Both the position numbers and the translations under genes were made by a program. Source: Zygophlyctis sp. KS116 (taxonomy: Eukaryota > Fungi > Chytridiomycota). Taken from it: 17,181 nucleotides of DNA. The DNA lies in contig BAAFSQ010000215.1 in NCBI GenBank assembly GCA_054661495.1, positions 1 through 17,181 of the forward strand, in the 5' to 3' direction. The notes beneath the pieces are model-generated. The model made no database searches. It was not told the DNA's origin and saw nothing but the letters and a program-made list of their open reading frames with translations. Shown piece by piece: positions 5,591 through 7,415 of the stretch. Each line of letters starts with the position of its first letter. Positions within the stretch are counted from its first letter, which is position 1.

Positions 5591-6788
5591 TTAATTATTT
5601 GATACATGACCATACACTCGTAGTCTAGATATACCTCCGTCAGGAAAAATTGTCAATTTGACTTGAGAAACTTTCCGAGAAGCAGACACATCAAAAGAAT
5701 CTGATGAATGTGGCGATAATTTAGCTCTTGGAACCAAGACAATCCATTGGCTATTTGGATTATGTATCAGCCCTTCCAACTGACAAGATTCAGGATAATT
5801 TCCCTTGAAATGATGAGTCTAAACGATTAGTTTGAATCCTTATTTACCTCAATTTCAATTTCGGTGACTATTCCTTCATGACCCAATTTAATAACAGTAT
5901 TCTCAGATCCAGGAATAATTAAATGACCATCAGCTCCATATTCATATGATTTTGGACGGTTAATATTTCTCGCGGTCTCCCATCCATCAAACATTCCTTC
6001 ATTTTTAAAACTTAATAGCGTACCTTTAGAAGGATCTCTTGAAAGAAGATTCATAGGTTGACCATAATGTGCATTTGAACAAGAAATAGCTCTTCCTCCA
6101 TTTTCTAAACATGCAAGATCCAAAATATCTGTATTTGAAACTTTTGTCCAATCTTTTTGCACACTTCCAAAAACTCGCAACCTTGAATAAGCCAGCTTAG
6201 ATATACCTTGCAATACCTCCATCCGGATGCATATTAACCTTTAGATGCGTTACTCTTCCGCTATAGATTGAAGCAAAATTATTTAATCTAGTATCTGGAT
6301 ATCCTGGTTCTAGTTTTGTAACTGGTAGAATCATTTCCCAAGAAGAAGTTAAAGACTCTACTTTAGCAATTTCATCTAAAGAAGCACACGTTCCCATTTC
6401 AGATTTTCTGTTAAAATCAACTTCTTCTGATAAACTAGTCCCTTGTATAGAAATAAAGGGAACATGATTTCCTGTGAAAAAGGCCGTATCAATCTCAAAC
6501 CCGCAAACGTTACCAGCAAGTCCCAATTTTATAATACAAAAATCATGACCTTGAATTCTTTTCCTTCTAGTTTCCCATCCATCCATTTCCTTTCCTATTA
6601 TAAGTCTTACAAACCGTACCGAATTCTGTATACGTAAAAGGATCAAACACTGGAGCCTTGTATGAAATCATATTTTCTATTGTTAGTCTACATAATTTAC
6701 CAGCAACAGCAAAAAAGTCATCAGTTGCAAACAGTATTCTACCGCCATTTGAGTCCAGAGCAAGATCAGGAAACTCTTTAAAAGACAT
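5591..6788 (-). CDS. DAL2: Allantoicase (purine catabolism)
   Basis: [65 protein letters not shown] (two allantoicase repeats). Introns 6677-6700 (24), 6595-6619 (25), 6182-6206 (25), 5997-6023 (27), 5819-5847 (29). Confidence 0.95.
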
Positions 6789-6789
6789 T

Positions 6790-7415
6790 TTATACTGGTT
6801 GTTTATTAAAAAATTTTCCTATTAAAGTAGATGATGGATCGATTTCTTTTGCATCATCTTTAAAAGATGTACCATAAAAGAATGCATGAGAGTCTTGAAA
6901 TATCCCAATCGCTCCTGATCCCAGAATACTTATAAATAGTGCTTTTTTTATATATGATCTAGGAAATTTATCTACACGATTGAATATATAATCTTCTTAC
7001 AATAGAAAGAAATAGCAGTAGACGCTAAAATACCTCCAACAATTGGATGAAACCATTGTTCACGTCCATTATAGATATCTAGACTAGTTTCTCCAATTAA
7101 TAAAAGAGAAATAATTGATGCAAACTTGAATCCATGCAATACTCCTTTTTCTACTCCTGCTCTTACAATCGCATTTGTTCTTGCCCTTTGAAAGTTTACA
7201 AACCCACCTTTAGTTTGTGGCAATTTGTTTGAATTTTCAGCCAAGAATGAAGCACCTCTGAGAGATCCTTCTCTGTATGCTCCCATTAAAAGACCAGTCA
7301 GAAATCCAGTTCTTATAACATCAGCAGAATAACGGGAAGTTGGAGTTAGATCTGATGATCCATAAGGAGGAAATATTAGAAATTGAGCAAATGAAATTGG
7401 CCACTGATAGTCCAT
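6790..7415 (-). CDS. Tim17/Tim22/Tim23-superfamily (TIMMDC1-like) mitochondrial membrane protein
   Basis: ATG at 7415 (MDYQW). Gly-rich TM helices ([28 protein letters not shown]) and FLAEN..KLP.T.GG. The 29-nt intron 6972-7000 opens a last exon [26 protein letters not shown]...FNKQPV* ending at TAA 6792-6790. Confidence 0.7.

Follow-up and report, generated by a model that had tools for sequence, protein, structure and literature searches.

A stop codon and a start codon one nucleotide apart: the Tim17-like/allantoicase junction in a compact chytrid genome

How can two intron-containing nuclear genes be expressed when a single nucleotide separates the stop codon of the first from the start codon of the second? 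This question is raised by a stretch of 17,181 nucleotides (nt) from the chytrid Zygophlyctis sp. KS116, hereafter the window, which is the whole of contig C215 (BAAFSQ010000215.1) in an assembly of 12.73 Mb and 1175 contigs (GCA_054661495.1). On its minus strand, a gene encoding a Tim17-like protein ends where an allantoicase gene begins, and the junction reads AAT AAA CAA CCA GTA TAA A ATG TCT TTT AAA GAG. A first-pass annotation of this DNA had written out the part from CAA CCA GTA to TCT TTT, and our own reading of these positions agrees with it. The anatomy it described (intron, stop, 1-nt spacer and start) stands, but the coupling between the two genes that it preferred as an explanation has gained no positive support. 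Judging from the sequence comparisons presented here, the stop-start junction is genuine and illustrates well how nuclear genes can abut. It is more likely a recurrent property of this genome, at the extreme end of a general compaction, than a dedicated coupling device.

Two gene models that meet at one nucleotide

Both gene boundaries at the junction are set by homology, and hence TAA-A-ATG is not a chance heptamer (Table 1). The abutment of the two genes, as first proposed, is thus borne out. The upstream gene (7415..6790, minus strand) has one intron and encodes 198 residues. This intron scores +1.85 in our intron model, where predicted introns have a mean of +4.3 (standard deviation, SD, 2.8), which places it within their range. 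A word search with exon 1 retrieved three homologues, with 97%, 61% and 70% identity. The one at 61%, P0002, also has 198 amino acids and is of the same gene type as locus L026; both lack the intron. They read ISLFY-RFPKSYFKRA where the spliced model of the window reads ISFY[Y]KFPRSY, and their proteins stop 1-3 residues from the TAA of the window. The intron-less homologues are therefore collinear with the window across the splice site, which supports the 29-nt intron on which the junction depends. The presence of this intron is polymorphic: it is found in the window and in loci L001, L024 and L025, and is absent from L026 (975-985) and P0002.

The family membership of the upstream product is weak. 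The profile PF02466 (Tim17/Tim22/Tim23/Pmp24; cut-off 32.7 bits) matches exon 1 with 19.6 bits (E=1.2e-3) and the full-length homologue P0002 with 24.4 bits. The latter match spans positions 8-109 of the 111 of the profile, which implies that the helix encoded by exon 2 is required. In the ESM Atlas, the best-matching clusters carry the names TIMMDC1 and TIM22, and the sole sequence match in the PDB is a non-significant one to chain 7zm7_J of the Chaetomium complex I (E 0.5-0.7). In a scan of metagenome contigs with the alignment of the Tim17-like proteins, 228 pattern stretches matched and none was confirmed. We take the product to be a four-helix membrane protein of the Tim17 superfamily, probably located in the mitochondrial inner membrane. 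Nothing points to a functional tie between this gene and purine breakdown.

The downstream gene is more easily identified. It has about 355 codons and five introns of 24-29 nt, and its stop TAA ends at 5591. Three of its exons match PF03561 with 109, 52 and 54 bits (E=2e-31 to 1e-13; cut-off 27), and the exon-by-exon search places two allantoicase repeats above the Pfam cut-off. Its start is also well delimited. In the allantoicase frame, a TAG (6821..6819) lies 10 codons 5' of the ATG at 6788 with no ATG in between, so that the latter is the first of its frame. L024, L025 and L026 match the peptide of exon 1 with 82-92% identity. In each of them, a methionine lies 4-7 codons before the motif FPDL, and the similarity ends upstream of this methionine. 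We also compared the window with L001, a metagenome scaffold that is 97% identical to it. All four differences in allantoicase exon 1 are synonymous, and those in exon 2 of the Tim17-like gene are three synonymous and one conservative. Hence, both reading frames are under purifying selection up to the junction. Elsewhere in the assembly (G000:C48:24832-25150, plus strand), a further allantoicase-like match is fragmentary and has an internal TAA; it may be a pseudogene or a diverged paralogue.

Could the junction be an annotation artefact, the genuine stop or start being elsewhere? One may think so because it is invisible unless the 29-nt intron is spliced and because the Tim17 profile score is under the cut-off. 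Yet the intron-less homologue is collinear and of equal length, the in-frame TAG precedes the allantoicase start, and the substitutions on both flanks are synonymous or conservative. We thus regard an artefact as extremely improbable. A second possibility is that a 22-nt stretch across the junction (6795..6774) is spliced at least sometimes, which would yield a Tim17-like/allantoicase fusion protein. This stretch joins both open reading frames (ORFs) in frame, and our first, untrained gene model did choose it. However, its score in the trained intron model is -4.65 (below about the 2nd percentile), against the mean of +4.3 (SD 2.8) of predicted introns. Its acceptor is GAG, and 1% of introns have a G at -3; introns of 22 nt are rare as well. 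The relatives have no equivalent: every upstream protein ends in a stop, and each keeps the methionine just before FPDL. Given its score and lack of conservation, we regard this candidate intron as a coincidence and the fusion as very unlikely. Ordinary gene finders will fuse or truncate abutting pairs, as our own first model did with these two genes.

Table 1. Features at and around the junction between the Tim17-like and allantoicase genes in the window.
Feature	Position	Strand	Description and basis
RNA-library contig, 182 nt	7281..7462	.	freshwater metatranscriptome, 100% identical
Tim17-like exon 1	7001..7415	-	ATG 7415..7413; 138 codons + 1 base
Tim17-like intron, 29 nt	6972..7000	-	GTAAGA...GTGTAG; homology and intron model
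Tim17-like exon 2	6790..6971	-	ends with the stop TAA; homology
ATG-free stretch, 63 nt	6789..6851	-	ends at the allantoicase ATG; 59 nt precede the Tim17-like stop
AATAAA	6802..6807	-	in-frame Asn-Lys; starts 15 nt before the stop; probable poly(A) signal of the Tim17-like gene
GT...GAG stretch, 22 nt	6774..6795	-	in-frame fusion if spliced; judged not to be an intron (intron model, relatives)
Tim17-like stop TAA	6792..6790	-	sequence reading
Single-base spacer A	6789..6789	-	identical in L001
Allantoicase ATG	6788..6786	-	sequence reading
Allantoicase exon 1	6701..6788	-	begins with the ATG; homology and comparison with L001
Allantoicase remainder	5591..6700	-	sequence reading, Pfam and gene models
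Allantoicase intron 1, 24 nt	6700..6677	-	reading and gene models
Allantoicase intron 2, 25 nt	6619..6595	-	reading and gene models
Allantoicase intron 3, 25 nt	6206..6182	-	reading and gene models
Allantoicase intron 4, 27 nt	6023..5997	-	probable; reading and gene models
Allantoicase intron 5, 29 nt	5847..5819	-	reading and gene models

Conserved gene order, variable spacers

We reached four further loci with DNA by a word search with allantoicase exon 3. The order of the Tim17-like gene followed by allantoicase is kept in L001, L024, L025 and L026, of which L001 and L024 come from lake samples. The distance between the two genes differs: the spacer is 1 nt in the window and in L001 (TAA-A-ATG), 2 nt in L024 (TAA-AT-ATG), 29 nt in L026 (TAA to ATG) and 39 nt in L025 (TGA to ATG). 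The contigs of P0002 and P0003, for which we had layouts of called genes, fit a spacer of about 30-36 nt. In L027, at 57% identity, a different gene lies upstream of allantoicase. The C-terminal tails of the Tim17-like proteins cannot be aligned beyond a conserved TL.G(K/R). The adjacency of the two genes is old and the stop-start geometry is labile rather than conserved.

This variation bears on termination-reinitiation, towards which the first-pass annotation had leaned. In this reading, one dicistronic mRNA would carry both genes and, after termination at the UAA, the ribosome (or the 40S subunit of it) would start again at the AUG located 1 nt farther on, as in viral stop-restart. The contact between stop and start is what would be expected for such a mechanism, and the spacer of L024 is only one base longer. 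But L025 and L026 keep the pair with spacers of 39 and 29 nt, and spacers of 1, 2, 29 and 39 nt among relatives are not predicted by a mechanism needing the contact between stop and start. Reinitiation after long ORFs requires a special element. The upstream ORF has 198 codons here, and the abutting pairs that we found in this genome share no upstream motif (see below). Polycistronic mRNAs are nevertheless known in some fungi and green algae (PMC4503453, PMC7896298).

Genome compaction and signals at gene ends

We modelled the genes in a sample of 217 kb (1.7% of the genome), which includes the window and the loci L004-L023, with 200 kb taken from the ten longest contigs. The gene finder was a small dynamic-programming program that scored coding sequence by hexamers and introns by a model trained on these data. 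The statistics on spacers, AATAAA and AUG given below rest on these gene models of our own, which are unvalidated. The 136 filtered models span about 90% of the sample and include approximately 470-570 predicted introns of 24-31 nt, with lengths peaking at 25-26 nt. The median spacer between same-strand neighbours (n=62) is 101 nt, with -1, 1, 1, 10, 20, 23, 27, 28, 33, 35 and 45 at the lower end. Convergent pairs are even closer, with a median of 43 nt, and five of them overlap, by up to 18 nt.

Hence, stop-start junctions are not, for this genome, the very unusual arrangement between nuclear genes that they were first taken for: in 3 of the 62 tandem pairs modelled, the spacer is between -1 and +1 nt. 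For the other two abutting pairs, exon-by-exon Pfam searches supported both genes in each. In the first, COG4 is followed by a class-I histone deacetylase (HDAC) with one shared base, TAATG (L010:4405-4415, contig C4, plus strand). In the second, NMD3 is followed by a glycosyltransferase-49 (GT49) with TAA-T-ATG (L010:7160-7175, contig C4, minus strand). The partners are functionally unrelated in both pairs, which argues against reinitiation, and the adjacency of the allantoicase and Tim17-like genes should likewise not be taken as a functional operon. We deem it unlikely that abutting same-strand genes (-1 to +2 nt) are routinely placed on dicistronic mRNAs and translated by reinitiation after full-length ORFs. 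The same contig has at its end a gene model (L010:1-960, minus strand) with six introns of 28-29 nt spaced by exactly 100 nt. Tandem Repeats Finder saw no 100-nt DNA repeat in L010:1-960, and the model may represent a repeat protein with one intron per unit or be an artefact.

What is observed in the sample is an intron-rich, complete nuclear genome that has been squeezed until about one in 20 same-strand neighbours touch. Near-zero spacers imply that promoters, 5' untranslated regions (UTRs) and poly(A) signals lie inside the neighbouring coding sequence, and two statistics concern such signals. The first is the position of AATAAA relative to stop codons. AATAAA occurs 28 times from -22 to +19, compared with about 1 per 10 nt farther off, and peaks at -15 and -2. 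When inside coding sequences, the hexamer is mostly read in frame as Asn-Lys. It is found at exactly -15 in the Tim17-like gene and in COG4. This clustering suggests that poly(A) signals are embedded in the last codons and that 3' UTRs are very short. If AATAAA is the poly(A) signal of the Tim17-like gene, cleavage 10-30 nt downstream of it would fall between its stop and about 16 nt into allantoicase.

The second statistic is the avoidance of AUGs before start codons. Over the 40 nt that precede starts, the density of ATG is about 6 per kb, down from about 18, although this is partly an effect of how starts are chosen. We therefore also measured the AUG-free tail of coding sequences. Where the next same-strand gene is no more than 100 nt away (n=30), this tail is about twice as long, with a median of about 55-65 nt (50 nt for spacers of up to 35 nt and 65 nt for spacers of 36-100 nt). 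For the remaining coding sequences (n=87), the median is 26 nt (one-sided Mann-Whitney p=0.0005; p=0.044 for spacers of up to 35 nt alone). The tail of the Tim17-like gene, at 59 nt, is also long. The AUG-free tails match, and hint at, a selection against upstream AUGs in 5' UTRs that overlap the coding sequence of the neighbour.

The AATAAA at -15 and the AUG-free tail lead us to favour, by a small margin over an even chance, the expression of the two genes from two separate, overlapping mRNAs, each capped and polyadenylated. The mRNA of the Tim17-like gene would be cleaved and polyadenylated at the stop or a few bases past it, under the direction of the in-frame AAUAAA 15 nt upstream, and its 3' end would thus be within the first codons of allantoicase. 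The mRNA of allantoicase would begin in the Tim17-like coding exon, within its last ~60 nt, such that a scanning 40S subunit would encounter no AUG before that of allantoicase. Overlapping monocistronic transcripts had been named at the outset as the alternative to coupling. As a candidate explanation they fit better, given the genome-wide compaction, the AATAAA at -15 and the AUG-free tail.

Several observations weigh against two separate mRNAs or soften the case for them. We found no TATA-like or initiator (Inr) positional signal upstream of starts in the 217-kb sample, and no promoter motif inside the upstream exon. When we searched a freshwater metatranscriptome with positions 5300..9000 of the window, we retrieved one contig (Table 1) and none across the junction. 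Spacers of -1 to +1 nt are mildly over-represented, with 3 observed and about 0.66 expected from the density at 2-60 nt (Poisson p ~0.03). This excess could mean that spacers accumulate at the limit beyond which deletions become harmful, or it could be a real class of junctions; a dedicated stop-start class would yield it too. Finally, the gene models come from our own simple finder, with the Pfam check made on the extreme cases. The retrieved contig extends 47 nt upstream of the Tim17-like ATG, which would fit a 5' UTR of 47 nt or more, with the caveat that a contig cannot show the strand or the true ends of the RNA. It does indicate that the organism, or its RNA or DNA, is present in that freshwater sample.

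Do these points favour reinitiation? The small excess of spacers between -1 and +1 nt, the TAATG pair included, speaks for it, as does the fact that a conventional promoter has no room between the two genes. On the other hand, neither the AUG-free tail nor the AATAAA at -15 is expected under reinitiation, and ribosomes translating the first ORF would not require a tail devoid of AUGs. We found no 6-7-mer common to four tight junctions in the region from -100 to -1. The motif UGGGA occurs, among the tight junctions, in the Tim17-like gene only, where it lies within Gly codons. With the variable spacers of the relatives (2, 29 and 39 nt), no common upstream element and unrelated partners in the other pairs, termination-reinitiation is left without positive support, and we consider it improbable for this pair. 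The A/T tract GGAAAATTTTTTAAT had been put forward as an internal start signal. It merely encodes the codons G-K-F-F-N running into AATAAA, its GK is conserved in homologues, and nothing marks a start there.

A dicistronic mRNA could also be translated by leaky scanning or through internal ribosome entry. For the polycistrons of green algae, it is leaky scanning that is favoured (PMC7896298). Here, the spliced mRNA has 11 further AUGs between the start of the Tim17-like ORF and the allantoicase AUG, which makes leaky scanning implausible. Moreover, the Tim17-like start has a purine at -3 and a G at +4. As for internal entry, there is no spacer to hold an entry site. We thus regard either route as most unlikely. 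Apart from these signals, about 10 of the 118 start codons in the sample have the motif GTCCGA(A) in the 80 nt that precede them, against 1.5 expected. The motif has no fixed distance to the start, is found inside genes too and is absent at the Tim17-like/allantoicase junction.

Comparable systems and neighbouring genes

PMC3629993, citing Williams 2005 and Corradi 2008, describes transcripts of microsporidia that have their 5' end in the gene upstream or their 3' end in the gene downstream. Microsporidia such as Encephalitozoon cuniculi and Antonospora locustae are fungal relatives of our organism and share with it very short intergenic spacers. They differ in having few or no introns, whereas the genome studied here has about 12.7 Mb, is intron-rich and keeps purine catabolism as well as velvet and bZIP regulators. 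Overlapping transcripts were described there and are proposed here. The nucleomorph of chlorarachniophytes is another case with tiny spliceosomal introns, abutting or overlapping genes and co-transcription or overlapping transcription (Gilson & McFadden 1996, in PMC3629993; PMC6009652). It is, however, the relict nucleus of an endosymbiont, with a few hundred kb and introns of 18-21 nt, and not a complete nuclear genome. The present organism thus provides a test case, neither microsporidian nor nucleomorph, for transcription and translation at near-zero spacers.

Polycistrons of mushroom-forming fungi (PMC4503453) and green algae (PMC7896298) resemble our pair in that they involve nuclear, intron-containing neighbours on the same strand, with short inter-ORF distances, and in green algae both ORFs are translated (PMC7896298). 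These polycistrons were defined by long-read cDNA. The algal ones differ further, since leaky scanning past short upstream ORFs is favoured there and is implausible across the 11 AUGs found here.

The geometry of the junction resembles that of viral termination-reinitiation, where stop and start overlap or lie within a few nucleotides. Examples include the calicivirus TURBS, the UAAUG of influenza B M1/BM2 and the stop-restart of fungal hypoviruses and victoriviruses. These viral systems depend on a defined upstream element by which the 40S subunit is tethered, and their geometry is conserved. In contrast, the tight junctions of this genome have no common element and the spacers of relatives reach 29-39 nt. 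If true, dicistronic reinitiation would be notable, as a mechanism so far established mainly for viruses would be in cellular use across a genome. Spliced-leader (SL) operons of nematodes and tunicates also allow a downstream cistron with almost no spacer, as seen here, but they require SL trans-splicing, which is not known from fungi.

The window has a GC content of about 33% and all three standard stop codons are in use. Its other genes encode velvet and bZIP proteins, a HIU hydrolase, RAMP4, a ribosomal protein of the L10/P0 family, a kinase of the eIF2-alpha type and others, a set that indicates a fungus or one of the close relatives of fungi. Two purine-breakdown genes flank the Tim17-like gene, the HIU hydrolase (7491-7815, plus strand) and allantoicase (5591-6788, minus strand), and the same layout of the three genes is found in L001 and L024. 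The similarity to L001 ends abruptly upstream of 7466 (window 7466-7480 versus L001:1846-1860). This break lies in the divergent spacer of 75 nt that separates the Tim17-like gene from the HIU hydrolase gene, and is close to the end of the RNA contig at 7462.

Short distances are also found elsewhere in the window. The end of the bZIP gene is 27 nt from the next gene. RAMP4 is a two-exon microgene (1387-1613, plus strand) with a 24-nt intron (1483-1506), and its exon 2 matches positions 31-58 of the 60 of PF06624 (E=5e-4). Its TAA (1603-1605) is followed by the next ATG at 1611, i.e. after 5 nt.

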